64,000 nt of DNA from Rhodosorus marinus CCMP1338 (Eukaryota > Plantae > Rhodophyta): the NCBI GenBank assembly GCA_029953675.1, contig JAMWBK010000004.1:3127942-3191941 (forward strand). Reading direction: 5' to 3'. The position numbers and the translations under genes are program-made. Positions 38,882 through 64,000 of the stretch are shown one piece after another; the first letter of the stretch is position 1; each line of letters opens with the position of its first letter. The notes under the pieces are model-generated. The model was not told the DNA's origin. It worked only from the letters and a program-made list of their open reading frames with translations, and did no database searches.

Positions 38882-38986
38882 GGTTAGTCTGGGGTTGCGG
38901 TAGTCTGGGGTCAATCGTTTTCAATGTTTTTAATCTGGCTTACTAACATGCAAAAAAGTGTTTAAAGTCCCTGCGCTCTGGGGTTA
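38882..38986 (+). repeat. Degenerate interstitial telomeric repeats
   Basis: GGTTAGTCTGGGGTTGCGGTAGTCTGGGGT at 38882-38911 and CTCTGGGGTTA at about 38976-38986. Confidence 0.8.
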
Positions 38987-40847
38987 GGCCTCGCACCGTT
39001 CCTAAAGGCTCTGCGAACAAAGTTCTACGATCTAACGATTGTCGCTATCCATGACGATATTACCATCGTAGGACCCCTACAGGAACTGAAACAAGCACTA
39101 GCCTGGAGCCGAACTATGCTCCCAGCTCTTGGGGCCCGCCTGAAACTCAACAAATGCACGCTCTACAGCCGAGCATTGACGACGGCACGCGTCATCAATC
39201 GCGAGATACCTGACGTATATGTTACCCGAGAAGGCGTCACAATCCATTCTATCCCGCTAGGAAACCGGCAATACATCGAGCACGAGTGCCATGCGCTTCA
39301 AAATAGGCACGAAAGGCTCATCAAGGAAATAGCACAGCTACTGCAACATGAACTTAACACACAGGTCGCATTGCTCAGGTACTGCGCTGAAACGCGCCTA
39401 GATTATCTTCTACGATGCCTAGCCTACCCGTTCGGCCGCAGTCTGGCTTGGGAGGCGGATACCACGACCAGATATCACCTGGAAACCCTGCTCGGCGGCC
39501 TCGCTACCTCTGCCATGGAGGACGAGGAGTACCTGGAACACCCCTGGGAACAGATTGCGCTGCCATGCCGGTGGGGGGGGATTGGGGTTCGCTACTCGAC
39601 GGCGTATCCAGCCTATCGCATACTACTCGGCTTGGACAAATACCTTTCGAAGCAATGCAAGAGACTGGCCTTACATCACTGAGCTGCAGAGGCAGGTTTA
39701 TACAGACATAACTCCGGCTACGGACACCGCGACACGACTACGATGGTCCACAGAACAGCTCGCAGACCAGATCTGATCATCTGCTCGAGCGATACAACGT
39801 AGACTGCGCCCCCAAACTGCGCCCCGGATCAGAAGACTTGCCACCCTGCAGCAGACGAGGGAAAACCACCCAGGAGACGCCCCAGAAGAATGCGGCGATT
39901 GGAATAATGGTTCTACACAACAAATTCTCTCTCGGGAGGCACGCCATTCGGCATTCCAACGCCTGGTGAACAATCCGCGCGTCTCCGGGGAATATCGTGC
40001 TCGTATCAGGTCCGCGGCGGGCTCTGGATCGGGAGTCTGGCTGCGAGACTGCCGACTTCGGAGCGAAAAAGCTGAGCTCAACGGAAATGCAGGTTAATAT
40101 CCGACAACTACTGGGGCTACCGATTCCGGGGCTGCGGACTACGGAGAAGTGTACTCGATGCCGTGGTAAACACGATGCAAATGGAGTACAACGCTTTCAT
40201 CATTGCCCCACGTCGACTGGGCTGTGGCAACGTCTGCATGACGAGATATGCCCGCAGATCGCAAGGTGGCTGAACAGGTGGAACTTTCTAGACATCGAAC
40301 AGGAGCCAGAGAAGTACTTTGAAAACTACGGGCTACGGCCAGACATTATTGCTACGCATCCGAGGACATTCGAACGGTATGCGCTGGGCGTGACGGTTGT
40401 GTCCCCTCTGCAAGGGAAGTATCTGAGGCGTAGTGAGGGGGAGAATGGATATGTAGCAAGATGTGCAGAGAGCTGGAAGAAAGCGCACTACAAGGAGGCG
40501 ATGACGATAGAGCACCCGGATGACAAGTTCATCCCAATTGCGATAGAAACGTTTGGGCGGACGGGAAATATGGCACAGGAGTTTCTGCAGGACAGCTGCA
40601 AACACCTATTGCACAGGAGCGAGGAGCTGAGCGATGTAAGATCGCATATCAACCGGCAACTGTGGCGAGGTAATGCGGAGATAGCGATAGGCGCTCTGCG
40701 AGTGGACCAGTTGGAGAATCCACTGGTCCCTGTTTTTTCTTTAGAACGTAGCATGAGACCCCGGTAGCGGGGTTCGAGTAAGTATTCCCCTAGATAGCGA
40801 CAGAAGTAGTGTTACGCTGCAGTAGGCAGCTACCCAGTAAAGTTTAC
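38987..40847 (+). mobile_element. 5'-truncated non-LTR retrotransposon, family A (RT C-terminal half, zinc knuckle, REL endonuclease), frameshifted
   Basis: AIHDDIT at 39044-39064, LNKC, WGG.G, CTRC...HHC, RPDII, FIPIAIETFG. Stop 40767; 3' end joins GGTTAGG. Confidence 0.92.
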
Positions 40848-40935
40848 GGTTAGGTTAGTCTGGGGTTTGTCTGGAAAGTTTACGGTTGCGTTAGTCTTGG
40901 TCTGGGGATTGTTTGGATTAGTCTGGGTCTGGAAA
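40848..40935 (+). repeat. Degenerate telomeric repeats separating tandem elements
   Basis: GGTTAGGTTAGTCTGGGG, GGTTGCGTTAGTC, GTCTGGGG and TTAGTCTGGG variants. Confidence 0.8.
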
Positions 40936-42972
40936 GCACAGCTTGTTCGTGGTGAGAAGCAGGAGGAAAGCATTTCCAACGTTGGTGAGCCCCCCCCCGT
41001 GGGGGAGGAAAACCCAAGCAGTGAGAGTGCCCAGCGGGGTGACAATTTCCGTCTCGTTGATCCGCTTGAGGAGGGGGAACTCGACGAAAGCCAAGTGCAG
41101 TATATACCTGAGGTTGCACACTGTGATTCTCCAACGGAAACAATGGACACTGCGTCCACGGTTCAAGAAGAGGAATTTCTACAGGACTTCATGGATAAGG
41201 TCTCGAAGTACACCGCCCTTTACGAAGATGTTGGGGTGGAAGCTGCAGAGATGCAGCGATTTTTTGTCAATGTCGATCGTTTATACACCAGGGCAGGCAC
41301 AACCGCCGATCTGAAGGGGATCAACGATCATCTGGAGCGGTTGGGTGCAAACCCCATGCTGTGGAACCCTTCAGAAGTGCGCAACGCAGGGCACCAGCGT
41401 CGTGGACAGAACGCGAAGATACCCTATCAATGTTGGAGTCAATCCAGAGATCAATGAACCGAGCTGTTTGGGATGGGACACCGTGAGCAACAAGACACCC
41501 TGGGACAACCGCAATTAGGACAGCAGACTATGGGACAGTCGAATGTGGGGCAACAGACTCCGGGACAGCCCGGGGTGGGACAGCAGGATCTCGCATTTCC
41601 CGCCCCAGGACATACCGCTCCCAGTGGCACCTACGCACAGCGTGCGGCCAAGGCAGCCGGCATGCGTCAACAGACAGCCCTCCGACAACTGCACGCCACG
41701 GTTGGAGGGAGTAGATGGGGCCCTGATACACACCCGGTGCTCGCGACGTTGCGCAACGTACGCCCGCCGCGCAACGAATTGGTGGCGCTCTCGGATTACA
41801 AACAAGTCCTGTGCACAGCGTTGGGTATTCCGGTACACCTGATTGCACATATCGATTTTGTTGCCACCCACGCACTGCTGGTATGTCATCCTGGCGCGAT
41901 ACCGTTGATCACCAGCGCCATTGCGAGGGGAGTGTTCCGCTCAGGTGTGTTCGGATCCTTCGCGAGACGCCGCCAAGATCACCAGGTAACAATACACACC
42001 GGAGTCGAGCCAGAAGCGCGCAACCTGATTGGGTACAATGAGAGGCTCACACTGCAGCCACATGAAGTTAGCCAACGCACACTTGAACGAGCCATTGAAC
42101 AGATGGAGAGAGTTAAGCGCCTGATTTCCCTGCGGTCGATGCCGTTCACTACCTCGGCTTCCATACATGCGCACCTGGAAGCTCGCATGGAGTATCTGCG
42201 CTCGTGCCTCGAGTCGCAGGAACCCGCAGCCCAGCGCCTACTGTCACGGAAGGAGAGAGTGAGATCCCCATGCAGGCAGGAGCCGATAACGAAGGTGCAC
42301 TGATCCCTGAAGTCACACCGGGCAATGCACAAAATGAATTACCGCCAGATATTGGACCCTCTGAAACTTCGGGTACCGGCAGCCCAGAGGCCCAGCCGAG
42401 CAGTATGGAAGTGGTTCATGATGAAAATACCCCCCCCCACCGACGAGACACGATCTCTCAAGAAGCCGAGACAGGAGGATACCCCATCTGCGCCCGAAAA
42501 CGCCCAATCATGTTCGTCCCAGGTTCGAGAAAGCGGTCGCGAGACACCGCGCTGATCACCACGGATCCAGAGGCTTGGGAACAACGGCTTCACATGTTCC
42601 TAGTTGCGCACACGGATGACGGCCGCCGCTGGTGGATGGTCACACATAGCCCCGTACGGACCCGTGAACACGTACCTAATGCCCAGGTCAAGCATTGGAA
42701 CCTACTACTCCACCGTGCTCTAGGTCTCGCATTGAACACTGCAGCGGCTCCGCTTTTACGCCTCTTCATCATGGCACTACCTGGCCTGGCGCTAGGGATC
42801 TGTGATCTTCAGACCGGGGAACAAATGGGGCATCTCTTGGAGGGGTGATTTCTCAGTTGTATGGAAGGCGTTAAATGTGGCGGCCACCAGTCAGCCCTCT
42901 CCTCGTGAGAGGAGAGCGGATAACCAGAGACATACATGGAAGGATAAACAGGTTGTGAAGCTTGCACGTCTC
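40936..42972 (+). mobile_element. 5' part of a telomere-targeting element (ORF1 with in-frame stop and frameshifts; ORF2 start at ATG 42510), cut off at the Ty3 LTR
   Basis: ORF1 core QLHATVGGSRWGPDTHPVLATLRNVRPPR is shared with ORFs at 55902 and 58682. ORF2 N-terminus TDPEAW...WWMVTHSPVRTREHVP...KQVVKLARL. Confidence 0.88.
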
Positions 42973-43267
42973 AACAGCCAGCTGGGTATTACTCAAATTA
43001 TTCCATATTTCGAGTTTTATTCCCCCCCCTAATTACTCCCAAATTAGGTAATATATCCCAATTCTATCTTGTTCTTCTCTATCTTCTCCTTGTCTTCTCT
43101 CCAGCTAACCTGGGAATATCGAGTTTGCCCATCGTACTTATACTCTTGCTCCATCGGGATGTGCAATAACGATTAAGCTCAAAAGGGTGTTGCACCTCCA
43201 GAGATTTTGGCACAGCCCGAGCATAATTTTGCATAGCCGGACATTGCTGGAAGGTGGAGACGTCACA
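42963..43267 (-). repeat. 3' LTR of the Ty3/gypsy element
   Basis: Near-identical to 47996-48286; terminal inverted repeat TGCACGTCTC...GAGACGTCACA. Confidence 0.9.
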
Positions 43268-46200
43268 TCCCTCCCACCGAAGAAGAAGCGCGGGGTCGGG
43301 CAGATTCTGCAGCACGATGAAAAATCATGTAGTAGCGAATTTGCCTTTTTGTAGCAGAGGTGTGTGGCAACTGGTGAGCTGCAATCCATCGAGCATCAGC
43401 TACAGTTTCACCCTCGAAGTATACCATATATTCGCTGGTTCCCTCTGGTTTCATACGATGACCAAGTACGGATGCGATTTCGCCTCCAGTCGCTGCTTCA
43501 GCTACCAACTCGGGTATGTCGGGTTGTACGTTGTCGGGAGAACCGACAACTTTCCTCAGCAGGGAAACGTGGAACGTTGGATGTACCTTCATTTCGGTTT
43601 GTAACTGCAGGGTATAAGCGACATTGTTCACCTTACGCTGGATTCTGAAGGGTCCGATGTATCGAGGTCTGAACGGTTTGGGATCTCGTAGCTGCAAGTT
43701 CGTGGTTGATAAGAGCACCATTTCGTCAGGGAAAAACTCAGGGTCTCGCCTTCCCGCGTCGTAGCGGATTTTCTGTACTTGCTTTGCGTACAACATGTTG
43801 TTCCTTGCTGCCATGTATTGATCCTGCTGATGCCGTAGCAAGGCTTCGGCTGCTTCGGGTATTGGTGAAGTGGTAGCTTCCTCTGCACGTGGTACTATGA
43901 ATGCTCCGGGTAACTCGGGGTTTCGGCCGTACAAAAGTTCAAAAGGTGAGTACTTAGTAGATTCCGAGATTTGCGTGTTGTAGACCAACTCCGCCATGGG
44001 AAGATCTGCGGCCCATGTAGTTCGGGTACTGTTGCATCGGAGGTATGTCTCCAACGTCTGATTGACTCGCTCCGTTTGTCCGTCCGTTTGCGGGTGATAG
44101 GCTGTACTCAAATTCGTTCTGACCTTAAGTATACCCATCAGTCGTTGCCAGAATAGGCTGGTGAACTTAGAATCCCGGTCTGAAATTATGGTTCGGGGTA
44201 ATCCCGCGAACCGTACCCAGTGTTCGAAGAATAATTCTGCCGTTTTCGCCGCATCTGCGTCCGTCCGGGTTGGTATAAATTTCGAATATTTTGTGAAGCG
44301 ATCGACAATTACTAGGATTGCATCAGCTCCCGATGTAGTCATGGGAAGACTAACGATGAAATCCATGGTGATGTCCTGCAACTTTGTTTCTGGTACAGGT
44401 AGCGGCTGTTGAAATCCTTGTTATGCCAGGAGTGGTTTCTGCTTTTGGCAGATTTCGCACTTTCCAACCATTGATTGAACGTCATCCCTCATTGTGCGCC
44501 AATAATAACGTCTCTTCAAAAGGTTGACTGTTTTATGAAGACCGAAATGTCCTCCCGTGGGTTCCTCATGATATCGCCGTAGTAAGTCCGGTACGAATTT
44601 CTGGGGCACACATACTCGATGGTGCCTGAACAATATGTCTTGCTTCTTCCGAAACCCTTGTTCCACATATTTGTTAGCTTCCAGATGAATTGCTTCGAAG
44701 TCAGGGTCCTGTGCGTAGGCTTCCGACCAGTTTTCATAAGGTAGAACGCTGTACATCGCCAACTGGTTGATTGCTCCCCGGCTGAGTGGGTCCGCAATAT
44801 TTTCCGCCCCTTTCTTGTATTCGATATCGAAGGAAAACGGCATTAAGCGATTCACATATCTCGCCTGTCTCTTGGTAAGCTCCTTTTGCGAGTGTAGAAA
44901 ACGCAAAGGGTTATGGTCGGTGCGAAGCACGAAGCGTTGCGCCTCTATATATGTCCGCCAGTGTAGTATTGCCAGGGTCAACGCGTATAACTCTCGTTCG
45001 TACGTTGAATATTTTTCCTCCGTAGGAGTAAACCTCTGGGAGTAGTACGCGATCGGGTGTTCTCCGTCTTCAAACGTCTGTAGTAGTACTGCGCCCATTC
45101 CCTTGTTACTAGCATCGGTACAAATCGTAAAGGGTTTATCGAATTCCGGGTTACGCAGAACCGGCTGCTGCTTCAGTTTCTCTCGTAGGGTATCAAAAGA
45201 TTCTTGTTCCTCTGGTCCCTACTGAAAATCCACGTTTTCCTCGTAAGGTTGGTGAGAGGTGCTGCTACAAGGCTAAACTTGGGCACGTAGTTTCGTAGAT
45301 ATCCGGTGAAGCCCAGAAAAGACCTTACGTCATGTACATTCCGCGGAATCTCCCAATTCGTTAAGGCGGCAACCTTGCTGGGATCGGGTTGGCGTTGTCC
45401 ACTGCCTACTATATGTCCCAGATACTTAGTCTCCGGCACTCCGAATACGCACTTCGATCGCTTTGTATACAGCTTGTTAGCTCGTAACTTCGTAAAAACT
45501 TTGGCTAGGTGCTGCTTGTGGTCAGCCATATTCGAAGAGTATATAATGATATCGTCAAAGAAGATAGTGACGAAGTCATTCAACTCATCGAAGAAGATGC
45601 TGTTGAGCAATCGAGTAAACACCGCAGGAGCGTTTGTGAGACCAAACGGCATCACTAACCACTCGTAAAGACCAAATGGCGTCGTGAACGCTGTTTTTGG
45701 AATGTCCTTCTTCTCCACGCGTAGTTGCCAGTAACCACTCCTCAAATCGATCACACTGAGATGTGTGGCTTTGCCGAGAGCATCTAGACAATCGTCTATC
45801 CTTGGCGGGCTGGTCTTGTTGACGATGGTTGCCTGGTTCAGTTTGCGGTAATCGATGCACAATCGCCGCCCACCATCTTTTTTGTCCACAAAAAGACAGG
45901 GTGAAGCAAAAGGCGACGAGCTAGGTCGAACGAGGTTTTTGCTCAGCAAATCTTGTAGTTGAGTTTTCAGATCCTTCTGATCTGCAAGACTCATTCGGTA
46001 TGGTCTTTGGGATGTTGGTTCAGTTCCCGGTTTCAGATCAATTGTAAAGTTGACGTTTCGCCAAGGGGCCAGGTTCTTAATGTCTTCCACAAAAACGTCA
46101 CCGTATTTATCCGTAATAAATTCCTCCAGATCTTTCGCCTCTTCCAGTCGTTTTTGTGTAAATTTCGTTATATTTTTGATTTCGGGTTCCTCCAATGTTT

Positions 46201-46974
46201 CACCTCTGACCAACTTCGTTTGATTCGTTACATTTTTCTGGTTCTGCACAACTAATTTTTCAGTAATGTCTTCACAAGGTGCTTTTCAAGGTTTCCTTCT
46301 GTGTAGTTGTCTAGGCTTTCCTCCGTATAATTTTCAGGTTCTGAGTGCTCAGGTTGTTTGTCGGGTTGTTCAGGTTCTACTTCAGGGTTTTGTTCAGGTT
46401 CGGCTTCAGGGTTTTGTTCAGGTTCTTCTTCATTGTAATTCTCCGGGTTTTCAGGGTTGTGTTCAAGGTGAGCAGCAGAACATTCAGCTGCTTCTGGTTG
46501 ATTTTCTGGTTCTTCAGGATTTTCTGGTTCTTCGGGATTTTCTGGTTCTTCGGGATTTTCTGGTTCTTCAGGATTTTCTGGGTTATTTCCTTCGTTGGGG
46601 TTCAGTGTCAGCGCCTGGTTTGATAGATCGAGTTGCGCCTTATATTTGTGGAGGAAATCTCTTCCCAGATACCCTGGGCTTGTGGCGTCTTCTACAACGT
46701 AAGGTCGCCAGTTGAAGCTGTGACCGCCCAGTTGTAAGGTTACCTTGGCTTCGCCCAAGATGCTTATGGATGTGCCTGGCGAGGCCGTGTCCAATTTCCC
46801 GTGTTGGGTTGAGATAATTGGAGCAGCATCTGGAATACCTCTCAAAACAGAATGACTGCTGCCGGTATCAACTAAGAGAGAAATCTCTCGACCTTTGATC
46901 CGCCCAACTAGTGTCATATCTGCCGTCAATGGGATCGAGACGCCTGGGTCGGCAACAGTGTCGGCGTGTGTCAC
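43263..46974 (-). pseudogene. pol: Ty3/gypsy Pol (PR-RT-RH-IN-chromodomain) broken by two frameshifts and two in-frame stops
   Basis: ORF pieces 46252-46974, 45173-46249, 44421-45098 and 43263-44381. TAG replaces the conserved W near 45220; in-frame TAA at 44421-44423. Confidence 0.88.
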
Positions 46975-47684
46975 TGCCGCCCCTCGTTTAACTGTTGGGT
47001 TCGTGGAGGTGTAGACTTCGAGACTGTCGGGTCCCGATCAGGGTTGTTCCAGCAGATCCTTTGTGTATGCCCCTTCTTCCCGCAGTAGTTGCAAACAATG
47101 TTGGTGTAGTTACGCTTCTGCAGCGCTTGCGTTCCGGGTTGGTAAATGCGTCCAGACCTGGTTCCCCTGCTTACAGTGGTCTGGGGCGTTGCCATTTTTT
47201 TGGGAAATTTCTCTTCCCGTCTGGAAGGTTGGCTGGCTGCCTCAGCTCCCTCAATTTTTAGGGCAAGTGCCTGTGCCGCCTCAAAATCCTGCACGTCCTG
47301 TATGTAGATGTATTTCTTGACCTCGGGTTTAAGGCCTTCGACGAAGCGGTCGAATTTCTCTGAATCAGAAATTTCTCCAACCTGGATCAGACATTTGTTG
47401 AAATATGCGGAATATGCTGCTACACTCGTTTTCTGCTCTGCCCGTGCGAGTTGCTGTTTCGCGCGGATCTTAGCGTCCGCTGGGTAGAATTGCGACTTTA
47501 AAGCATCCTCAAATCCAGCGTAGCGCGTGGGTTTTTGCGATTCAGGTATCAGGGACCACCAATACGAAGCGTCGCCAGTGAGATAGCCCTCTGCGAGGGT
47601 AATCTTGTAGTCGTCGTCGTCGTCAGGCAGACGAGCCAACTTAAAATACGTGCGTAGGCTATTCAAGAAGGTACTGATAGTCAA
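46971..47684 (-). CDS. gag: Ty3/gypsy Gag (N-terminus degenerate, extends upstream to about 47846)
   Basis: PKPYDGRRDA upstream, YLTGDASYWW, FVEGLKPEVK, CCHC knuckle. Confidence 0.9.
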   Translation of the reverse strand: MTISTFLNSLRTYFKLARLPDDDDDYKITLAEGYLTGDASYWWSLIPESQKPTRYAGFEDALKSQFYPADAKIRAKQQLARAEQKTSVAAYSAYFNKCLIQVGEISDSEKFDRFVEGLKPEVKKYIYIQDVQDFEAAQALALKIEGAEAASQPSRREEKFPKKMATPQTTVSRGTRSGRIYQPGTQALQKRNYTNIVCNYCGKKGHTQRICWNNPDRDPTVSKSTPPRTQQLNEGRQ

Positions 47685-47995
47685 AGCATCGCGCCGCCCG
47701 TCATAGGGTTTCGGTTGCGGAGCCCTGGATCTTGATTAGCGACGGCATTCTGGGTTTATCTCGAATGCAGGTTCAGGTATCAAATTGTCAGGATCAGCTT
47801 TTTCTGGTTTTCTGGTTTCTCAAAAGGTCTCTGGTTGCGGGCTCATATTCGTCAGGGTTTCTGGTTATATAGGATTCCTCTGGTTCAACTGGTTATATAG
47901 GATTCCTCTGGTTCTTTTCTGGTTCTAGTAGTACTGGGCTCACTTTTCAGGTTCGCATAATGGTTCCTCAATCGCAACTTGCGATGAGACCAGAT

Positions 47996-48286
47996 TTCAC
48001 GTCTCCAACAGCCAGCTGGGTATTACTCAAATTATTCCATATTTCGAGTTTTTCCCCCCTAATTACTCCCAAATTACGTAATATATCCCAATTCTATCTT
48101 GTTCTTCTCTATCTTCTCTCCAGCTAACCTGGGAATATCGAGTTTGCCCATCGTACTTATACTCTTGCTCCATCGGGAGGTGCAATAACGATTAAGCTCA
48201 AAAGGGTGTTGCACCTCCAGAGATTTTGGCACAGCCCGAGCATAATTTTGCATAGCCGGACATTGCTGGAAGGTGGAGACGTCACA
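47996..48286 (-). repeat. 5' LTR of the Ty3/gypsy element
   Basis: Matches the left LTR apart from about two substitutions, a homopolymer difference and a ~12-bp indel. Confidence 0.9.
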
Positions 48287-51073: not shown

Positions 51074-51300
51074 ATGATTCATTACATGATAATGGCAACG
51101 TTTCATCGGGAGAAATAATCATGATTCAATACCTAGGTCAGAGATGATTGATTATTATGTTAACATTGATAGAATATCGGACGATTTTTCAGACCGATTT
51201 ATCGCACGACAGGTAATCGGATCTGGTTTTACGGAGAATTTCAATCAGACCCCGCCGGGTAATTGCTTACTGTGTTTCAAGAGTCTAGCCACTTCGAAAA

Positions 51301-53540: not shown

Positions 53541-53680
53541 CTAACCTCCCCCTCTAAACAAAAAATGCTAGCCAACCACTACTTCGTCGCCCACCCCCCA
53601 AAAAGAAAAACTAACCTCCCCCTCTAAACAAAAAATGCTAACCAACCACTACTTCGTCGCCCGCCCCCTAAAAAGAAAAA
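53541..53680. repeat. 70-bp tandem duplication
   Basis: CTAACCTCCCCCTCTAAACAAAAAATGCTA...AAAAGAAAAA at 53541-53610 and 53611-53680 with about three substitutions. Confidence 0.92.
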
Positions 53681-54281: not shown

Positions 54282-55376
54282 ATGGCGAATACAATACTGT
54301 TCGGATTGGTTTTGGTGGTGGCACTCTACGTGAGTGCCGCTCAGCAAGCGAATGTGGTGGTCGTCACTGGGGATAATCAGAACATCATCCAGCTCAACCA
54401 TGCGCACACGATGGACATTGTGCAGACTATTCAGCATAGTGAAAAGAAGCTGTTTCAGGTCCTTTCGCTGGCGACAAATGTGTACGTGTCGGCCGTGAGT
54501 ACCCCCAGTAACTACCCCCAGGCTGAGATTCTGATGTATGAAGTCCAATCCGGAACGAACACGCTTAAGTTTGTGCAAAAGGCGACGTTCGCACCTGATT
54601 GTGGGCAGCCGGTCGCGTTGACAGCAAGCTACGACTACACCGACCAGGCGGTGCTGGCTATGACGTGCTCGGATACCGAATGGGTTGTGGTTATGGATGC
54701 GTGGACACTGTCGGTGGACCAGATAGTTGGGAAACCTAGAATCAAGGACATCACTATCACAGGTATCACCGAGTCTGCGTTGACCGCCAAGTACCTCTAC
54801 GTCACCTACGGCATCAGCGCTGTTGACAACGACGACAAGGGTTTGCTGGTCCAGTACAGCCGGACCACCCCGTATGAGATCCTCAACACCCTCGTAGTTC
54901 GTGGTCAGTATTCTCACCTCTTGATCGCCGGAGGCAGTAATCTTTTCCTGACGACGTCGGGCAACGGCCCATCCTACCTCCTCCAATTGAACCCAAACAC
55001 CCTCGAGGAAATTGATCGGAGAAGCCCAAAGAACCTCGATTTTCTCCGGATGACCATGAGTCCCGACCAGCTGAGTATGTACATGTACGTTCAAAATCCA
55101 AATGGGAGAAGGGGAAAAATTCGAAGCTTCGACCAGAGGAGTTACCCGGCCCAGAAGTATTGCCCCGATGTCGAAATCGACTTGCCCCCTGGCACCCAAT
55201 CCATCGTCGTCGAGGGCTACCTGTTTATCAGGACCGCCGGGACGGTGACAAGGTTAAACCTCGTGGATGAAACCGGATGTCCCAGTCCGGATGTTCAGGG
55301 CAACATTATTCTAAACGACGACGTAGTTTACTCTGGCGTTGCTATGGCCTGCCTGGAATGCCTTCCGATCGCTTAA
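54282..55376 (+). CDS. Secreted 364-aa protein, probable beta-propeller fold, intronless
   Basis: Signal peptide MANTILFGLVLVVALYVSAA, ~45-aa beta-rich repeats (KYLYVT, NLFLTT, SMYMYV, YLFIRT), paired cysteines. Confidence 0.8.
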   Translation: MANTILFGLVLVVALYVSAAQQANVVVVTGDNQNIIQLNHAHTMDIVQTIQHSEKKLFQVLSLATNVYVSAVSTPSNYPQAEILMYEVQSGTNTLKFVQKATFAPDCGQPVALTASYDYTDQAVLAMTCSDTEWVVVMDAWTLSVDQIVGKPRIKDITITGITESALTAKYLYVTYGISAVDNDDKGLLVQYSRTTPYEILNTLVVRGQYSHLLIAGGSNLFLTTSGNGPSYLLQLNPNTLEEIDRRSPKNLDFLRMTMSPDQLSMYMYVQNPNGRRGKIRSFDQRSYPAQKYCPDVEIDLPPGTQSIVVEGYLFIRTAGTVTRLNLVDETGCPSPDVQGNIILNDDVVYSGVAMACLECLPIA

Positions 55377-55574: not shown

Positions 55575-55784
55575 GTACTGTCGCCATCCGTTAACCACCC
55601 CACTGTCGCCTGGCTCTTGTGAGGAGTTGTGATTGAGTAAAAAGATACTTTGAAATCGATCACTGTTTCGAATGCCAGCGTTTAGAAATATTAGAAACCG
55701 CTGATGCGAGTTGGATTTGAATGCATCATGTTGAATAGTGAATGTCGTTCTGCTCCCCAGATGTGGCTGGGGTTACGTTAGTCT

Positions 55785-57726
55785 ACTGGCGAACCCCCCC
55801 TGACTGGGGAGGGAAACTCGACAAATGGTACCTGTGCACCCGGGGGAGAGAATCTCACCCAAGCTGATCAACCACGGGAAGCGGAACACGCAGAACAGTG
55901 TGTGCCCTCTGACCACGATGCTCACCAAGGAGAAAATACTGACGCAGAGATGGAACCAGCGCCCGCCTCTCCAGATGTTGATGCCGTACAAGAGGTCTTG
56001 AGGCAGCTGGCTAAATACACCGACTTTTACAGGGATGTTGGGGTCTGTCGGACGGAGATCCTTCGATTCTTTACGGGCGTACACAAGTTATATTCGAGAG
56101 CAGGGAACACCGGCGACCTCAAAGGCATCACCGACAGCATCGAGGAGCTGAGCGAGAACCCCCTTACCTGGGTCCCTGGGGCACAACAACCACCCGGCAG
56201 ATCTGGGGGTGAGCGGCCTGCTCAGATACCCAATCAACTGGGGAATCAGCCTCCGTTGGTCACCAACTTGGGACACCGACAAATGGGACACCCGCACCTG
56301 GGACAGGCGAGGACTGGAGCACCCAATTTTGGCAATATGGGACAAGCTGGGCTGGTGGGCCAGGGACAGCCAGGACAGCAGCCGCTGGGACAGTCCCATC
56401 CCGGCACCATGGGACAGGAGAACGAAGAATTTCCAACTTTGCTACAATCAGTTTCTGGGTTCTCCCTGGGACACACCACCCCGGGACATACCCCTGTAAG
56501 TGGAACCTACGCCCACCGGGCCTCTAAGGCAGTGGGCATGAGACAACGCACTGCCTTACGCCAACTCCATGCGACCGTAGGAGGCAGTCGATGGGGTCCG
56601 GACACCCATCCGGTACTGGCAACCTTGCGCAATGTTAGGCCGCCGCGCACAGAGGTGGTGGCGCTGGCAGACTACAAGAAAGTGCTCTGCACGGCTCTGG
56701 GCCTACCGGCACACCTGATCGCGCACATTGATTTCGTCGCCACCCATGCGACGCTGATCTGCCACCCAGATGCCATGCCGCTTATTACCAGCGCAATTGC
56801 GGGGGGAGTTTTTCGCACCGGAGTGTTCGCTTCGTTTGCAAAGCGCCGACACGACCACCAAGTGATGGTGCACACGAGTCACGAGCCAGATGCCCAGAAC
56901 CTACTCGGGTACACCGAGAGACGCGGCCTGCGTCCGGAAGAAATTGCACCGCGGACCATCGACCGCGCTATCGAGCAGGTGCAGCGCATGAAACACACCA
57001 TGACTCTGCGGGCGCTTCCGTTCTCGACGTCTGCGTCGATCCATACGCTCCTTGACGCACGCATGGAGTATCTGCGGACAAACCAGAGTTCTCTAGCACG
57101 AAAGGGCGATCCTGAGAGCCTCCCTGCGATGGGAGGTTGTGAGGCGAGGGTGAACACCGCGGGGCACGACTCCGCCAACGCCGAGGCCTCCATGGCTGCG
57201 AACGAAGGGGAAACCACCACTGAAGAGGACGAAAATCCTCATGCAGAGTTGCCCATTAACCTGGACACAGCACCACCGTGCGAGAGCACTATGAACGCCA
57301 TCGACCAGTCAGCCTCGATGGAATTCGAGCATGGACAGGAGGAAGATGCTGACGACAACCCGCACGCGGAGCTCCAGTGCAACATCCAGGAGCCTCCTAA
57401 GCAGAAGCGCACGCGCGTGGACGCTACGGCAGTCGCAGATGAGAGCATGGAGATGGACACCCAGGACGGCCAAGACAATACTCCCCAGTAATGCCGAGAC
57501 GCCCCACGAGTACTAAACGCCCGCGCGACGACTACACACCGAGCCCCTCTCGCTCACCTCGCAGAGCAAGCGCTCACCGACAACGACCTACTCCTGGGGT
57601 GCTGATAACCACCGACCCTGAAGCATGGCAGGCAAAACTCCACACGTTCCTGGACACCGCAACAGACTCCGGACGGTACTGGTGGATGGTCACCAACAGC
57701 CCAGTACGCACTCGAGAGCATGTCCC
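55785..57726 (+). mobile_element. Telomere-targeting element family D: ORF1 (open 55785-57491), TAATG, first ~78 codons of ORF2; 3'-truncated
   Basis: Follows CTGGGGTTACGTTAGTCT (55767-55784). ORF1 is homologous to ORF 58682-60265; ORF2 stops abruptly at TREHVP in telomeric repeat. Confidence 0.9.
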
Positions 57727-57752
57727 TAGTCTGGGGTTACGTTAGTCTGGGG
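57727..57752 (+). repeat. Perfect telomeric repeat tract capping the truncated family D element
   Basis: TAGTCTGGGGTTACGTTAGTCTGGGG. Confidence 0.92.
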
Positions 57753-57827
57753 GGTAACCCCTGACCAATAGGATCCTTATTGCTTCTTAATGGGCTCCAA
57801 TAGGGAGTTCTTCAGTAAAGTGTACGC
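57753..57827 (+). mobile_element. ~75-bp 3' tip of a further family
   Basis: GCTCC-AATAG-GGAGT hairpin and CAGTAAAGTGTACGC end, then GGTTACG. Confidence 0.6.
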
Positions 57828-57847
57828 GGTTACGTTAGTCTGGGGTT

Positions 57848-58557
57848 ACAACGGAGCAGTGCACCAGTTGCCGTAGGAAACATGGCCCAAATGGGGTGCA
57901 ACGATTTCAACACTGTCCAACATCGACGGGACTATGGCAGAGACGGCACGACGAGCTCTGTACGGAGCTAGGGAGATGGCTCAACCGATGGAATTTTCTT
58001 GACATACAGCAAGAACCGCAGAGGTATTTTGAGAATTACCAGCTGCGACCAGATATCGTGGCGACCCATCCAAAGACCTTTCAAAAGTACGCGATCGATG
58101 TGACGGTGATTTCACCGCTACAGGAAAAGTACATAAGGCGTGGCAGTGCAGAAAACGGGTATGCAGCGAAACTGGCGGAGAACTACAAGCTCGCGCACTA
58201 TAAAGAGGCGATGAGTGTGGAAAAGCCCGAGGAGAAGTTCATCCCGATCGCGATAGAGACCTTTGGGCGGAGCGGGAGGTTGACGCAAGACTTTTTGCGG
58301 GACAGTTGTAAACACTTGTTGCATCGAGATGAGGAGCTGAGGGATGCACGATCCCAGTTAAACAGGATCCTATGGCAGGGCAACGCGGCGATTGCGCTTG
58401 GCGCTCTACGTGCGGACCAGTTGGAGAACCCACTGGTTCCTGTTTTTTCTTTTGAACGTAGCATGAGACCCCGGTAGCGGGGTTGTTGTGAGTGATTCCC
58501 TAGATAGCAATCGGCTTAGTGTTACGTCGCATTAGGCGACTGCCCAATAAAGCTCAC
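57848..58557 (+). mobile_element. 5'-truncated copy of family B (about 710 bp)
   Basis: Matches 62772-63481 with one difference noticed (CTG vs CTA near 58340 / 63263); flanked by telomeric repeats. Confidence 0.95.
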
Positions 58558-58629
58558 GGTTACGTTAGTCTGGGGTTTACGGTTACGTTAGTCTGGGGTT
58601 ATGACGATAGTCTGGGGTATCTGGGGTTA
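58558..58629 (+). repeat. Telomeric and variant repeats between elements
   Basis: Two perfect units plus GATAGTCTGGGGTATCTGGGGTTA variants. Confidence 0.9.
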
Positions 58630-58681
58630 TTGGATAAGGTTCGCAATTAAGTTTGTAGGTTTGGTTCGCCTGGGGTAAAAT

Positions 58682-60265
58682 ATGCCAAACACTGGCACTT
58701 CCCCTCTGTTTGGGGAGGGGAATTCGAAGAATACCGGTGCAATGAGCGGAATGCTGCCTGCCTCTCCAATTGCTGAACGAGAGGACGGGCATGGGTCACA
58801 TGATGGACTACAAGCGACTACTTTACGCCCAGAAGAACCGTGCCAGGAGGGGAGTCGGACAGAGCCTTCTACGTCATTCTCTCCCGCTAACACGTTCCTC
58901 CACCAACTTCGAAGCTACGATCAGTGCTATCACGCCCTCGGAATTGGGGAGCAGGACATCGCGAACTTCTACAAAGCAGTCTTCAATCTCTACTCGCGCA
59001 TTAACAGTACCACAGAGATACATAATGTCACCAGCCGCCTCACGGAACTTGCACAGAAGCCCCACATGTGGCAAGCTTCTGCACAGACTTCGAATCCCTC
59101 GGGAGCTTCGGCGCATCACCGGCCGACGGCGGTGGTCAATCAACTTGCGGCCGGAACGGGCTTCAATCAAGTTCCAGTCGGGACAGGTGTCCCTGCGGGT
59201 GTCCGGTTTGAGACGGCTTTCCCGGCCCTTGGGAATGACACCCCCAGACCCACCTACGCGGCGGTTTCGGCGGTAGAAGTACCAGAGAACGGTGTAGAGA
59301 CACCCATCCGCACCATGCGAAGGCCTGGGCCGCAGACGCAACATGCCGCCCTGAAGCAGTTACACGCCACAGTGGGAGGGGCCAGCTGGGGCCCTGAGAC
59401 CACGCCAGTGCTTGTTACCCTCCGAAATATCCGTCCCCCACGACAGGATGAGGTGGCTGCTTCTGACTTCACTACGGTCCTCTGCCGGGCGTTGGGCATT
59501 CCCGGCTCGTATGTGGCGCATTTGGACTTTATCTCTTCACACGTGAGCCTCGTGTGCCACCCTGATGCAATTCCTCTTCTCCAAAGCGCAATCAGCCGGG
59601 GTGTGTTCCGGACTGGGATTTTCGGATCCTTTACCATGCGACACCCCGATCGACAGGTGAGCCTGTACACCGGGCACGGTTTAGAGGCGGATAACCTGCT
59701 GGGGTTCAACGAGCGGCAACGACTCGCCGGCGGAGATGTCAGGGCTCAAACGCTGAGACGAGCGATCGAGCAGATCATACGCATCCGCGCGCGGCTGAGC
59801 CGTCGACATCTCTCGTTTACAACTCTCGCCCGAGTGCACGAGATGCTGGACCAACGGCTTGAAAAGTTACAAGCCCTTCAACAGCAACCTGCGGTATCCA
59901 GGGAGAGCGCGGAACCCCTAACGACTGCAGCCGCACCAAACGCAGCCGCTGAAGCCTCGTCGTCTCCGGACGATGCACAGGCAGCCTGTGGGACTGTTGC
60001 CACTCAGGGTGACTCCGGTGGAACATCCCAAGTACCGCAGGATGTGGAAGAAGAGGACAATCCCCATGCGGAACTCTCGTGCAACTTGCCGGAACCTCCT
60101 CAACTTAAGCGCTCGCGCCGGTCTGCCAACGGATCTAGCACGGATGCAGAAATGACACCAGCTCCCCTCGACCCCACACCGAGCGAGAATGGACTACAAC
60201 CTGAAACTGCAGCCAATACAAACCCGTCGGTTCAGCAGGAAGCGCAGGACAACGAGCAATCATAA
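58682..60265 (+). CDS. ORF1 protein of family B (527 aa, no recognised family)
   Basis: ATG-initiated intact ORF with homologues in three other elements in the window. Confidence 0.88.
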   Translation: MPNTGTSPLFGEGNSKNTGAMSGMLPASPIAEREDGHGSHDGLQATTLRPEEPCQEGSRTEPSTSFSPANTFLHQLRSYDQCYHALGIGEQDIANFYKAVFNLYSRINSTTEIHNVTSRLTELAQKPHMWQASAQTSNPSGASAHHRPTAVVNQLAAGTGFNQVPVGTGVPAGVRFETAFPALGNDTPRPTYAAVSAVEVPENGVETPIRTMRRPGPQTQHAALKQLHATVGGASWGPETTPVLVTLRNIRPPRQDEVAASDFTTVLCRALGIPGSYVAHLDFISSHVSLVCHPDAIPLLQSAISRGVFRTGIFGSFTMRHPDRQVSLYTGHGLEADNLLGFNERQRLAGGDVRAQTLRRAIEQIIRIRARLSRRHLSFTTLARVHEMLDQRLEKLQALQQQPAVSRESAEPLTTAAAPNAAAEASSSPDDAQAACGTVATQGDSGGTSQVPQDVEEEDNPHAELSCNLPEPPQLKRSRRSANGSSTDAEMTPAPLDPTPSENGLQPETAANTNPSVQQEAQDNEQS

Positions 60266-63200
60266 TGCCGTCCAGACGCAGGGGACGTAAACGCCCACGA
60301 GAAGAGCCTCTGTTCTTCTCTGACCGGGAGGCCTGGATTTGCCGCTGGAACGCTTTCGTAGCTGAGATCACGGAGGAGGGGAGGCATTGGACGCGCATCA
60401 CACATTGCCCGGTGCCCACACGACGCTTCGTGCCCCGAGCACACGTTTCTACATGGCGCCGGCTTCTTCGGGCTGCCCTCGAGCTTTCTCTGGACGCGAC
60501 AGCACCTCCATTAGCGAGCCTGCTTCTCGTCGGCCTTCCGGGTCTGGTCCTGGGCCACTCCACCCTTGACACAGGGGTACAGGTCGCACATGTACTAGAA
60601 GGAGAGTTCCAGCGGGCCTGGACGGCCCTTGAGGAGAAAGCCGCCTCAATGAAACCCCCACCTACACCACACGGTGCCGAAGACGTTCGTCGACGAGTCG
60701 ATGGCCGCCGCAAACAAGCACTTAAACTAGCACGACTCGGCCGCCTCTCGGATGCTGCAAGAAGACTCGAGGCCACCGAAATGGCGCCTTTCACAGCGGC
60801 TACCTGGCGGCAACTACAACAGCTCTTTCCGAGCCCCGCCAGTGTGGATTCACCGGTGGAGATTGTGGAAGCCCTCCAAGGCCTACTCACGACGGCCAAC
60901 GACACACTGAAGAGGCGGTGGGATCCAAAAACGGCTGCCGACGAAGGCCTCCTCTCAATCGTGGCACGACTACCTCAAGGGACGAGCCCTGGACCGAGTG
61001 GAATGCGCGCGGAACATTTGCAAGGGGCGAACCAACAGACTCAGGTAGCACTGATTCGGGTCTTGCGCCAACTCGCCACCGCGCCCGGGCGATTCTCACC
61101 CCTTCTGCTACGAGCCTTGCGTAGCAGTAGACTTCTGCCTTTCTCGAAGCCAGCACAGGGGGTAACTCCCAGGCCAAGGCAGGGATCCGCCCAATAGGCG
61201 TGCCGGAGGTCCTACGCAAAGTGGCAACTCAGTGGGCGCTGCGAGCGGTGATGGACCGGGTCCGCGAGCTGTTGGTGCCGTTGCAGCTGGGAATCGGGGT
61301 CAGCGGTGGCTGTGAACGGTCACTGCACGCCATCCAGGCCCACCTGTCATGTGAACCAGACTCGGTTGCACTTCGACTGGACCTCGAGAACGCCTTTAAC
61401 CGCATTGATAGGCGAATTGCCAAGAAACTGGTGGCCCAGCACTTCCCTGAGCTCACAGCGGTGTATAGGCTCGGATATGGAGGCGATGGGGAAACACCGA
61501 CGCTTTGTGGATGGCGGACGACGCAAGAAGACAACCACCTGCACAAGGACAGACTGACGCTGCAAGCAGAAACCGGAGTACAACAAGGCGACCCTTTAGG
61601 TCCGGTGCTACATGCGCTCTCCCTGGCCCCTTTTCTCAAGGCACTCAGCAACAAGTTTCAGGGAGTCACGATCGTCGCCATCCATGACGACATCACTCTG
61701 GTCGGCGCATTGCCTATATTGAAGGAGGCTCTCCAATGGGGACAGACCCTGCTACCGTGCCTGGGAGCCCGCCTGCAGCTCAGCAAATGCAGCCTTTATG
61801 GTCGATCCCTCACCACTACACGCTTGGTGAACCGTGCGATTCCCGGCGTGCAAGTGACTAGGGAAGGCCTCACAATCCACTCCATCCCCATCGGCACTCG
61901 GCAGTACATCGAGCACGAGTGTAGACGGCTGCAGAACAAACACGAGACGCTGTTCAAGGAGATTTCGAGCCTGCCAACCGATGAACTGCCTATCCAGCTT
62001 GCGCTTTACAGGTATTGCGCTGAAACGAGGTTGGATTACACCTTGCGATGCCTTGCCTACCCGTTTGGACGAGCTCTGGCCAGGGAAGCGGACAGTATGA
62101 GCAGATACCACTTAGAGGTCTTGTTTGGTGGCCTCTGCACGACGGCCTTGGTCGAGGATGAGCTGATACACCCGGTCAACGAGCAGATTTCGTTGCCCTG
62201 CCGATGGGGCGGATTGGGGTTCGCGACCCGTGCAAGAATACAGCCGATTGCGTTCTTCTCGGCCTGGGCGCAGACCCTGAGAGACCATGCGGGTCAGTGG
62301 CCCTATATAACGGAGGTGGAGCGACAGGTCAGGCAAGGTGGCGACATACACATCAGCCACCTAGGCCGACTGCAGGTGTCAACGGAGACGATCGGTGAGC
62401 AAATCCGCGCGTCTAGTCGTGCTATAGAGCGGAGACTGTGCCCAGACACGGCGCCGCGGATCCGGAGACTGGCCAAGCTGCCCGAATTGAGAGACGAAGC
62501 CGCACCTGAAGTAGCGGACTCCCCTCGCGATTGGAACCATGGTTCAATACAACAAACCCTCTCTAGGGAGGCACACCATCGCGCGTTCCAACGTTTGGTC
62601 GGCAACGAGGGCGTTTCGCATGAACACCGTGCAAGAATCCGATCGGCGGCCGGCTCGGGTTCGGGGGTATGGCTGCGGGAACTACCGTTGCTAGAGCCGA
62701 GAAAGCTGGACTCACAGGAATTGCAGGTAAATGTTCGACAACTGCTGGGGCTGCCGATTCCGGGGTTGCGGACAACGGAGCAGTGCACCAGTTGCCGTAG
62801 GAAACATGGCCCAAATGGGGTGCAACGATTTCAACACTGTCCAACATCGACGGGACTATGGCAGAGACGGCACGACGAGCTCTGTACGGAGCTAGGGAGA
62901 TGGCTCAACCGATGGAATTTTCTTGACATACAGCAAGAACCGCAGAGGTATTTTGAGAATTACCAGCTGCGACCAGATATCGTGGCGACCCATCCAAAGA
63001 CCTTTCAAAAGTACGCGATCGATGTGACGGTGATTTCACCGCTACAGGAAAAGTACATAAGGCGTGGCAGTGCAGAAAACGGGTATGCAGCGAAACTGGC
63101 GGAGAACTACAAGCTCGCGCACTATAAAGAGGCGATGAGTGTGGAAAAGCCCGAGGAGAAGTTCATCCCGATCGCGATAGAGACCTTTGGGCGGAGCGGG

Positions 63201-63401
63201 AGGTTGACGCAAGACTTTTTGCGGGACAGTTGTAAACACTTGTTGCATCGAGATGAGGAGCTAAGGGATGCACGATCCCAGTTAAACAGGATCCTATGGC
63301 AGGGCAACGCGGCGATTGCGCTTGGCGCTCTACGTGCGGACCAGTTGGAGAACCCACTGGTTCCTGTTTTTTCTTTTGAACGTAGCATGAGACCCCGGTA
63401 G
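60265..63401 (+). CDS. ORF2 of family B: reverse transcriptase plus restriction-like endonuclease (~1045 aa; one -1 frameshift near 61160-61195)
   Basis: SPGPSGMRAEHL, GIRPIGVPEVLRK, LDLENAFN, GVQQGDPLGP, AIHDDIT, LQLSKC, CTSC...QHC, RRHDELC, RPDIV, IDVTV, FIPIAIETFG. Confidence 0.93.
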
Positions 63402-63481
63402 CGGGGTTGTTGTGAGTGATTCCCTAGATAGCAATCGGCTTAGTGTTACGTCGCATTAGGCGACTGCCCAATAAAGCTCAC

Positions 63482-63535
63482 GGTTACGTTAGTCTGGGGT
63501 TACGTTAGTCTGGGGTTACGTTAGTCTGGGGTTAC
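63482..63535 (+). repeat. Three perfect telomeric units between elements
   Basis: GG(TTACGTTAGTCTGGGG)3TTAC. Confidence 0.97.
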
Positions 63536-63729
63536 AGGATCCTATGGCAGGGCAACGCGGCGATTGCGCTTGGCGCTCTACGTGCGGACCAGTTGGAGAA
63601 CCCACTGGTTCCTGTTTTTTCTTTTGAACGTAGCATGAGACCCCGGTAGCGGGGTTGTTGTGAGTGATTCCCTAGATAGCAATCGGCTTAGTGTTACGTC
63701 GCATTAGGCGACTGCCCAATAAAGCTCAC
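63534..63729 (+). mobile_element. 196-bp 5'-truncated copy of family B (most distal insertion)
   Basis: Matches 63286-63481. Confidence 0.95.
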
Positions 63730-64000
63730 GGTTACGTTAGTCTGGGGTTACGTCTGGGGTTACGTTAGTCTGGGGTTACGTTAGTCTGGGGTTACGTTAG
63801 TCTGGGGTTACGTTAGTCTGGGGTTACGTTAGTCTGGGGTTACGTTAGTCTGGGGTTACGTTAGTCTGGGGTTACGTTAGTCTGGGGTTACGTTAGTCTG
63901 GGGTTACGTTAGTCTGGGGTTACGTTAGTCTGGGGTTACGTTAGTCTGGGGTTACGTTAGTCTGGGGTTACGTTAGTCTGGGGTTACGTTAGTCTGGGGT
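63730..64000 (+). repeat. Terminal telomeric array (TTACGTTAGTCTGGGG)n, about 16 units plus one 12-nt variant
   Basis: Homogeneous 16-bp tandem array with the G-rich strand running 5'->3' to the end of the sequence. Confidence 0.93.

Follow-up and report, generated by a model that had tools for sequence, protein, structure and literature searches.

Restriction-like-endonuclease LINEs that probably insert site-specifically into the 16-nt telomere repeat of the red alga Rhodosorus marinus

The DNA analyzed here, referred to as the window, comprises the last 64,000 bp of the 3,191,941-bp contig JAMWBK010000004.1 in assembly GCA_029953675.1 of Rhodosorus marinus, with window position 64000 being the end of the contig. 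This assembly, published by Lee et al. 2023, represents the nuclear genome of R. marinus; it was built from Oxford Nanopore Technologies (ONT) reads with NextDenovo, polished in three rounds of Pilon with short reads, and contains 13 large contigs, 12 of them with at least one telomere (PMC10250338). A preliminary description, made from the sequence alone, had assumed an algal host, and the window does map exactly to this unicellular red alga (Stylonematophyceae). At its right edge, the window reaches an assembled chromosome end, with a terminal telomere array (63730-64000, + strand) of approximately 17 units of the 16-mer TTACGTTAGTCTGGGG, including one 12-nt variant, which runs to the physical end of the contig with its G-rich strand pointing 5' to 3' toward the chromosome tip. 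Allowing up to two mismatches, we found 26 matches to the 16-mer in the window, all on the + strand and all at or beyond 38895, with 0.03 expected by chance. Next to and among these repeats lie copies of two-gene retrotransposons of the long interspersed nuclear element (LINE) type, which are unannotated in the assembly, only a single gene having been called in the last 20 kb of the contig.

Mapping by tblastn with the family-A proteins and by blastn self-comparison of the window revealed ten element copies between 38882 and 64000, all on the + strand, as are all other parts of the element system that the window holds. The preliminary description had counted about ten copies, all in this orientation, from at least four diverged families; the count holds for that range but misses a further relic outside it (35587-36186), and the families number at least five (A, B, C/F, D and E), with amino-acid identities to family A from approximately 26% (D) to 74% (B). 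Element sequence amounts to ~15.8 kb of the last 28.4 kb of the window, and no copy was detected by tblastn in the first 35 kb.

The full-length family-A element, A-full (58619-63481, ~4.86 kb), starts with a 5' untranslated region (UTR) of about 60 nt (~58619-58681) that contains the conserved motif TTGGATAAGG. It is followed by open reading frame (ORF) 1 (58682-60265, 527 aa), by ORF2 (60265-63401), whose start overlaps the ORF1 stop in the sequence TAATG (60263-60267) and which would specify 1045 aa once a single 1-nt frameshift is bridged, and by a 3' UTR (63402-63481) with a hairpin at 63450-63464 and the sequence AATAAAG at 63470-63476. This copy, previously placed at 58630-63481 and thought to look complete, is complete in length but not strictly intact, ORF2 being split at a run of five G residues (61158-61162) between ...LLPFSKPAQG and GNSQAKAGIRPIGVPEV... 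Programmed ribosomal frameshifting at this position was ruled out, because three relatives are continuous there, namely a copy near the end of another contig (locus L003, 65-73% identical), a contig from a Joint Genome Institute (JGI) sample (L004, 45%) and an 840-aa MMETSP protein (P0123). The frameshift is more likely a copy-specific 1-nt indel or an ONT/Pilon homopolymer error.

Pfam identified a reverse transcriptase (RT) domain, RVT_1, in ORF2 (~61263-61799), and alignment to R2 structures in the PDB located a CCHC motif and a restriction-like endonuclease (REL, also RLE) toward its C-terminus (~62784-63144). Specifically, ORF2 matches R2 proteins in both the RT and the C-terminal block, whereas it matches the LINE-1 (L1) ORF2p in the RT only; aa ~841-940, with the motifs C-x2-C...HC, RHD, PD and D-V-T-V, align to the R2 endonuclease 9nl2 with a weak per-domain E value of 0.47 but with all motif residues in register. 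No AP (apurinic/apyrimidinic) endonuclease (Exo_endo_phos) was found in ORF2 by Pfam. Judged from these alignments, the ORF2 C-terminus is a CCHC plus PD-(D/E)xK restriction-like endonuclease, placing the elements in the REL group of LINEs. That they are non-LTR retrotransposons, that is, lack long terminal repeats (LTRs), is indicated by RVT_1, by the RT alignment to L1 ORF2p and R2, by the absence of terminal repeats around A-full, and by the 5'-truncated copies A-frag1, A-frag2, B and G. Within ORF2 aa 1-300, the second half shares homology with the N-terminal extension that RTs of other restriction-like LINEs carry. When the REL domain alone served as query, eight proteins were returned, all from Rhodosorus.

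ORF1, as had been anticipated, is a separate orphan: a search of 1.84 billion representative proteins found just 12 relatives, one of them a spurious match to a repeat protein and the others R. marinus fragments, MMETSP and JGI sequences, and sequences from two Logan contigs. Pfam gave no match to ORF1, to the ORF2 N-terminus or to the ORFs of copies C, D and F. An AlphaFold2 (AF2) model of ORF1, with a mean predicted local distance difference test (pLDDT) score of 58 and cores at 80-89, has confidently predicted helical segments, among them a three-helix bundle and a helical hairpin, and a domain of beta-alpha-beta-beta-alpha-beta topology (aa 243-330). Its best fold matches in the PDB were the RNA recognition motif (RRM)-like domains of DbpA/YxiN, with probabilities up to 0.98 but E values of 0.012 or higher, which are below the threshold of significance, and on the strength of this model it is plausible that ORF1p is an RNA-binding protein. 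The overlap of stop and start codons between the two ORFs, proposed earlier as TAATG coupling, is conserved in six elements, as TAATG in three (A, F and the L003 copy), as ATGA in one (L004), and as the longer overlaps ATGTCTGA (8 nt) in D and ATGCCCAGTGA in L009. Experiments on SART1 have shown that UAAUG drives termination-reinitiation for its ORF2 (PMC3894237, citing Kojima et al. 2005), and by analogy ORF2 of the Rhodosorus elements may be made by termination-reinitiation at the overlapping stop and start.

The distal stack (55767-64000) is bordered on its inner side by a telomere unit, CTGGGGTTACGTTAGTCT (55767-55784), that meets unique DNA at junction phase 11, where phase denotes the position within the 16-mer TTACGTTAGTCTGGGG and T1 is its first base. 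The first element in it, copy F (55785-57726), retains ORF1 from about codon 5, TAATG at 57489-57493 and ORF2 to aa ~78, with tblastn identities of 35% for ORF1 and 40% for the ORF2 N-terminus. It is 3'-truncated and capped by telomere repeats that begin at phase 7 (...GTCCC followed by TAGTCTGGGG), which we read as erosion of a chromosome end and subsequent healing. Copy G (57753-57827) is a 75-nt 3'-terminal fragment of another family (...TTCAGTAAAGTGTACGCGG) that is flanked on either side by telomere units, with an inverted piece of telomere sequence, GGTAACCCC, at the 5' junction. A-frag1 (57850-58557) is a 5'-truncated family-A copy, from ORF2 aa ~862 through the 3' UTR, that is 99.9% identical to A-full. 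Between it and A-full is a telomere tract (58558-58618) with two perfect units split by TTTAC, which may be a minimal 3'-tail insert; beyond them, variant units (TGACGATAGTCTGGGG, TA) extend up to the 5' end of A-full. A tract of 3.4 perfect units (63482-63535) separates A-full from A-frag2 (63536-63729), the last 194 nt of family A and 100% identical to A-full, after which the terminal array begins.

On the proximal side, unique subtelomeric DNA meets the first stack at degenerate telomere units (38883-38911, junction phase 5), which look like an old telomere seeding point. Copy B (38912-40849) is 5'-truncated, running with frameshifts from ORF2 aa ~159 to the end, with tblastn identities of 56-74% over three frames and 69% nucleotide identity to A by blastn; it has a complete 3' UTR that ends ...CAGTAAAGTTTACGG and continues directly into TTAGGTTAGTCTGGGG. 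Degenerate telomere units follow (40850-40927), including a minimal 3'-tail fragment, AAAGTTTACGG, at ~40873-40884 and variant units up to the 5' end of copy C. Copy C (~40928-42963) retains the 5' region, ORF1 with an in-frame stop (41455-41457) and ORF2 to about aa 150 (tblastn 38% for ORF1 and 47% for the ORF2 N-terminus; 71% nucleotide identity to copy F), and is ended by an LTR retrotransposon. Copy D (48334-51016), of the most divergent family, has a broken ORF1-like region and an ORF2 that reaches the early RT motifs and ends inside the RT domain (tblastn 26-36%; the ORF translation reads ...SKPGHTASSPAIRPIGLVEMVRKL...). It is bracketed by a direct repeat of 44-47 bp (48287-48333 and 51029-51076; GCTACCAATAATACTATGACAGCC...AAAAGTAACC) and is not a simple target-primed insertion; a 60-bp repeat found around it by blastn gave no coherent insertion model. 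Copy E (52452-53153) is a 5'-truncated REL fragment with a decayed 3' UTR (tblastn 39-49%), sharing 68% nucleotide identity with the old relic at 35587-36186. This relic consists of a telomere remnant, GTCTGGGGTT, followed by a fragment of an E-like family that lacks its 5' part and comprises the REL domain (47% to ORF2 aa 591-757 by tblastn) and the 3' UTR, in which the conserved 3' motif can be read; its 3' side now has no telomere flank. Whereas nearly all copies had been described as bounded by telomere-derived sequence, such sequence is still touched by approximately seven of the ten, with C in contact at its 5' side only and D and E having no telomere flank.

We found that every element 3' end abutting telomere sequence joins the 16-mer at T1 (...AC[G/A]G followed by TTACG...), with GG or AG as the terminal bases before it. 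In the window, this same-phase junction occurs in the three family-A copies, B and G; elsewhere, it occurs at position 8722 of L003 and, in a cluster in the interior of a third contig (L007), at 7890, at 9690 and in a minus-strand copy. Given the first junction, the probability that six further ones would fall in the same one of 16 phases is ~6e-8. The sense strand is always the G strand, and the 5'-truncated copies A-frag1, A-frag2, B and G retain exact 3' ends. No poly(A) tract was found at any junction examined. Because the phase of the 3' junction is constant across families and loci, insertion into the 16-mer is site-specific, in agreement with the 16-bp target put forward previously.

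The 3' tail itself is kept across families as ...TAGTGTT-hairpin-CTGCCCA(A/G)TAAAG-NNN-AC(G/A)G, even at approximately 45% protein identity (L004). The hairpin (63450-63464) has five pairs, is paired in 86% of cells, and shows compensatory changes at three of the five pairs, a covariation score reached by two of 500 shuffles.

At the 5' side, upstream telomere tracts end at phases 16, 1, 1, 1, 2, 3, 4 and 4 in eight of nine junctions, that is, 0-4 nt from the 3' site, and an additional phase-1 5' junction is present in Logan contig L006, in which telomere units lie between unique DNA and a truncated copy. Junctions leading from unique or internal element sequence into telomere repeats, on the other hand, start at phases 5, 6, 7, 11 and 11; these are the end of copy F (57727), positions 21412 and 20869 of L003, and the boundaries at 38883 and 55767. 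The two patterns fit, at the level of sequence, endonuclease-directed target-primed reverse transcription combined with the healing, by telomerase, of ends that have eroded or broken. Copies truncated at the 3' side, which are otherwise unusual, are explained by the orientation of the elements, since their 3' ends point to the tip and erosion takes the 3' parts. In addition, at two independent 5' junctions (57749-57765, and 21433-21452 of L003), a telomere G-run is directly joined by an inverted telomere piece, GGGGTAACCCC..., perhaps a trace left when the second strand was made by snap-back or with template switching.

The same architecture and orientation were observed at L003, a locus situated 2-24 kb short of the end of contig JAMWBK010000007.1, with all copies pointing toward the contig end; two chromosome ends, those of contigs 4 and 7, thus carry such stacks. 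Normal genes are followed there by a telomere unit, a 5'-truncated copy, a divergent RT and further telomere units, and then by the 5' end of a family-A element (99% identical to the window copy) that is cut at ORF1 aa 142, a telomere cap and another copy. Family-A identity is 99.9-100% within the window, 99.0% to the other chromosome end and 98.4% to a fragment on JGI contig L008, and because copies are 99-100% identical, family A is, as far as sequence can tell, recently active. Downstream of the divergent RT of L003 (14074-15968, 32% to A), a short tandem tail resembling (GCCAATAAA)n was noted at ~16940-17000, and another at ~12010-12060 of L007; this RT may represent one more LINE family, whose 3' end differs.

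Relatives of both ORF1 and ORF2 are encoded by MMETSP transcripts of R. marinus. The JGI sample 3300016967 has proteins in common with these transcriptomes and is therefore most likely a transcript assembly. Among its contigs, L005 starts with telomere units and continues into the 5' UTR and ORF1 of another family, while L004 and L008 read 70-260 nt beyond the element 3' end. L008 also contains an inverted telomere unit ~55 nt downstream of the element 3' end. The nearest relative outside Rhodosorus (P0004) has 32% identity and lies on a 30-kb metagenome contig with two RT copies head to tail, in which no telomere-type repeat was recognizable.

Beyond chromosome ends, the interior cluster L007 (JAMWBK010000002.1, 938,022-958,342 of 3,480,314) holds the same LINE families on both strands, with telomere-unit fragments matched in orientation, and runs off the locus. 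RepeatMasker source data of the genome paper list 4036 LINE/CRE elements totaling 2.82 Mb, or 9.04% of the genome, in 24 RepeatModeler families, several at ~1% divergence; these make up 98% of all LINE DNA, and the main text is silent on them (PMC10250338). The elements probably belong to the CRE clade, and the earlier term "CRE-like" agrees with the automated RepeatModeler/RepeatMasker labels of the genome authors.

Other features interrupt and flank the stacks. The LTR retrotransposon that ends copy C is a decayed Ty3/gypsy element on the minus strand (~42964-48286), outside the LINE system, with LTRs (~42964-43267 and 47992-48286) that are 93% identical and gag, protease, RT, ribonuclease H and integrase regions in five broken ORFs (Pfam Retrotrans_gag, RVP, RVT_1, RT_RNaseH, Integrase_H2C2, rve and SH3_Tf2-1). 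Its two flanks are unlike each other, and no clear target-site duplication was found. Between the old copies and the distal stack are approximately 4 kb of unrelated DNA, and an annotated, host-like gene (54282-55376, + strand, 364 aa), the one called in the last 20 kb, with a signal-peptide-like N-terminus and no Pfam match, is located beyond copy E; since this gene is distal to old element relics, its position suggests that the segment reached the chromosome end via subtelomeric recombination. The picture of copies stacked head to tail up to the terminal array therefore applies to 38883-42963 and 55767-64000, but not to the part between them. Three tandem paralogous genes on the minus strand (15703-17034, 20176-21438 and 22737-24062), annotated by NCBI and encoding proteins of ~420-440 aa with C-terminal C2H2 zinc fingers, look like a subtelomeric gene family; that at 20176-21438 is a single exon. 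Two short, unrelated tandem duplications are present at 17568-17876 (169-bp unit, 1.8 copies) and 53541-53682 (70-bp unit, two copies). An Rfam scan of the whole 64-kb window gave no match.

The telomere repeat deserves separate comment. Searching the literature for TTACGTTAGTCTGGGG in any rotation and on either strand gave chance primer matches only, and the sequence is not given in the text or supplements of the genome paper (PMC10250338), so that the 16-nt telomere unit of R. marinus appears to be unreported in the searched literature. At 16 nt, the unit is unusually long for a eukaryote other than yeasts. If the 16-mer is a telomerase product, the telomerase RNA template would hold at least one circular permutation of CCCCAGACTAACGTAA.

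Taken together, the data make it probable that these elements are site-specific REL LINEs living in the R. marinus telomere repeat by a mechanism such as the following. A bicistronic RNA would be transcribed, which is partly borne out by the related transcripts, some of which start in upstream telomere repeats and some of which read past the 3' end. ORF1p, the orphan protein with an RRM-like core, would be translated first and ORF2p by termination-reinitiation at UAAUG, as in SART1. The ORF2p endonuclease would then nick the C-rich strand at 5'-...ACGTAA^CCCCAG...-3', opposite the boundary between GGGG and TTAC on the G strand, with an ambiguity of 0-2 nt, and the freed 3'-OH would prime reverse transcription from the conserved RNA 3' end (hairpin, A[A/G]TAAAG and ...AC[G/A]G), no poly(A) being copied. 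Second-strand cleavage would occur 0-4 nt away, and incomplete reverse transcription would yield the 5'-truncated copies. With the sense strand being the G strand and 3' ends facing the tip, erosion or breakage would strip 3' parts and telomerase would re-cap the ends in an arbitrary phase; the new repeats would serve as fresh targets, and a stack could grow over time and later decay, taking up other insertions and rearrangements. Speculatively, copies may also bring telomere units along, allowing interstitial clusters to grow.

Several observations weigh against this interpretation. Copies D and E lack telomere flanks, and in JGI contigs L004 (4125-4187) and L008 (1861-2128) the conserved 3' end, ...AATAAAGCTCACAG, is followed by TCTCC... 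and not by TTACG. The L007 cluster is interior and adjoins ordinary genes, and the 2.82 Mb of LINE/CRE sequence exceeds the capacity of the terminal ~15-25 kb at about 26-34 chromosome ends, so that targeting would not be exclusive to chromosome ends, although the LINE/CRE label is automated, covers the LINE families of the genome and is not tied to these exact copies. The copies are thus not confined to chromosome ends. The sole full-length copy here carries an ORF2 frameshift, which falls in a homopolymer, the assembly having been made from ONT reads and then polished with short reads. ORF2 aa 1-300 were modeled by AF2 (N-terminal 310 aa, pLDDT 67) as all-helical with no fold match in the PDB (best E = 1.1), and neither Pfam nor the AF2 fold search detected a zinc-finger or Myb motif in the ORF2 N-terminus. 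Finally, the suggested nick position is read from the junctions only, and the hairpin covariation, with seven sequences as a thin basis, is suggestive only.

A rival explanation is a self-seeding target, in which the endonuclease would read the 16-bp unit anywhere and the elements would carry such units at their own ends by way of read-through or upstream-initiated transcripts; most copies would then lie in interstitial nests that expand by themselves, chromosome-end stacks being only one manifestation. In favor of this are the copies of the interior cluster, on both strands and each with orientation-matched telomere-unit fragments, the transcript L005 that opens with telomere units, the variant telomere-like units that form part of the 5' ends of full-length copies, and the LINE/CRE share of 9% of the genome. 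However, both chromosome ends that could be examined hold stacks oriented as expected for insertion into a terminal array, and the first 35 kb of the window are free of copies; we consider this explanation distinctly unlikely as an alternative, and it would be a refinement of telomere-repeat targeting, not a contradiction of it.

A second explanation is that the 16-mer is a tail repeat made by the elements, not by telomerase, and that chromosome ends are kept by retrotransposition as in Drosophila. Short tandem repeats do end many LINEs, and the terminal array directly follows an element fragment. But the 3' ends face the tip, whereas priming from the chromosome 3' end would put the poly(A) or 3' end toward the centromere, and Drosophila-like end-priming was ruled out by this orientation. 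In addition, 16-mer tracts sit on broken unique sequence in the variable phases listed above, as telomerase healing predicts, the array is G-rich on the strand running 3' outward, and on 12 contigs ends of this kind were counted as telomeres by the genome authors, leaving this explanation very improbable. Least probable of all is passive accumulation, in which unspecific LINEs would pile up in gene-poor subtelomeres, like Zepp in Chlorella, and acquire a telomere link via recombination and recurrent healing: D, E and the 35.6-kb relic without telomere flanks, the two JGI contigs with non-telomeric 3' flanks and the presence of another repeat (Ty3/gypsy) speak for it, but it would leave unexplained the constant 3'-junction phase over at least five families and three loci, the 5' junctions within 0-4 nt of the same site, the strict orientation with respect to the G strand, to which the interior cluster also keeps, and a restriction-like endonuclease typical of site-specific LINEs.

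Site-specific insertion into telomere repeats by REL LINEs is not without parallel. The closest analogues are MoTeR1 and MoTeR2 of Pyricularia (Magnaporthe) oryzae, FoTeR of Fusarium oxysporum and Cnl1 of Cryptococcus, all of the CRE clade, which form head-to-tail arrays with anything from part of a unit to several telomere units between neighbors, with variant units at 5' ends and relics in the interior (PMC7367193; PMC12857005). They have in common with the Rhodosorus elements an RT plus restriction-like endonuclease, insertion in telomere repeats, 5' variant units, truncated copies capped after breaks, interior relics and LTR-element insertions in the arrays, the Ty3/gypsy element in the window resembling the MAGGY insertions into MoTeR arrays. 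The orientation, however, is opposite: 5' ends of MoTeR face the chromosome end (PMC7367193) and FoTeR 3' ends are followed by TAACCC, the C strand (PMC12857005), whereas the Rhodosorus elements point their 3' ends toward the chromosome tip, with G-strand sequence following. The hosts are fungi as opposed to a red alga, and the target is a 6-bp unit as opposed to a 16-bp unit cut at one phase. Furthermore, the Rhodosorus elements have a separate orphan ORF1 with stop/start overlap and at least five diverged families in coexistence, and, provided that they fall under the LINE/CRE label, they would make up as much as ~9% of the genome.

SART1 and TRAS1 of Bombyx mori (R1 clade) likewise insert at a fixed telomere-repeat position, occur as several families beside a telomerase-type repeat and have two ORFs, with SART1 using a UAAUG overlap for ORF2 translation, as related in PMC3894237. 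They differ in having an AP-type endonuclease at the ORF2 N-terminus and poly(A) tails, in contrast to the C-terminal restriction-like endonuclease and the junctions without poly(A) in Rhodosorus, and the Rhodosorus ORF1 has no zinc knuckles. CRE1, CRE2, SLACS and CZAR of trypanosomatids are strictly site-specific REL LINEs, the group whose name the R. marinus families carry in the LINE/CRE label, but their target is the spliced-leader gene and not the telomere. SLACS and CZAR have two ORFs, and GilM and GilT (Genie) of Giardia have a single ORF. GilM and GilT are REL LINEs in head-to-tail arrays at chromosome ends that RT sequences place with CRE (PMC10088271); they are reported as tandem arrays at telomeres and not, as in Rhodosorus, as fixed-phase insertions in a long repeat. 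R2 of arthropods and vertebrates provides the only solved structures with detectable similarity to the Rhodosorus ORF2 in both the RT and the C-terminal endonuclease, and it resembles the Rhodosorus elements in lacking poly(A), its 3' UTR being recognized for target-primed reverse transcription. It has, however, a single ORF with N-terminal zinc-finger and Myb domains, of which no motif is detectable in the Rhodosorus ORF2, and its target is 28S rDNA. Zepp of Chlorella vulgaris is an algal LINE that gathers at a chromosome end (PMC10088271). It differs from the Rhodosorus elements in belonging to an L1-like clade and in its green-algal, not red-algal, host. Higashiyama and colleagues are said to have found in 1997 that Zepp nests into other Zepp copies and not into a fixed telomere-repeat site.

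Telomere-repeat-specific retrotransposons are known from insects, where they are of the AP-endonuclease type, and from fungi and Giardia, where they are of the restriction-like type. The Rhodosorus elements are an undescribed lineage of this known kind, as had been surmised, together with an RT-REL ORF2; we found no description of them, or of telomere-specific LINEs in red algae, in the searched literature, and for red algae they would represent the first described system of this type. Since no zinc-finger or Myb module is evident, a long, information-rich 16-bp target read at one phase would be favorable for studying how REL LINEs read their targets. The stack can be viewed as the record of a chromosome end that has repeatedly undergone insertion, erosion and healing, and the supplement of the genome paper suggests that LINEs of this kind form the dominant repeat class of R. 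marinus, at 9% of the genome. An unlikely but consequential extension is that the elements carry their target with them, transcripts that begin in upstream telomere units or extend into downstream ones copying 16-bp units, so that a rare insertion far from the chromosome end becomes a new landing pad for other copies, by which a telomere specialist would have expanded to ~9% of a 31-Mb genome and into interstitial nests. If so, the nests might act as heterochromatic or centromere-like blocks, and elements and telomerase might jointly shape, at the true ends, the unusually long 16-nt repeat, whose recognition would have to be maintained by endonucleases from at least five families. The diversity of the families may reflect a long co-evolution with the telomere, and the presence of at least five families at one site, together with recent activity, would allow co-evolution of telomerase template and endonuclease to be tested.

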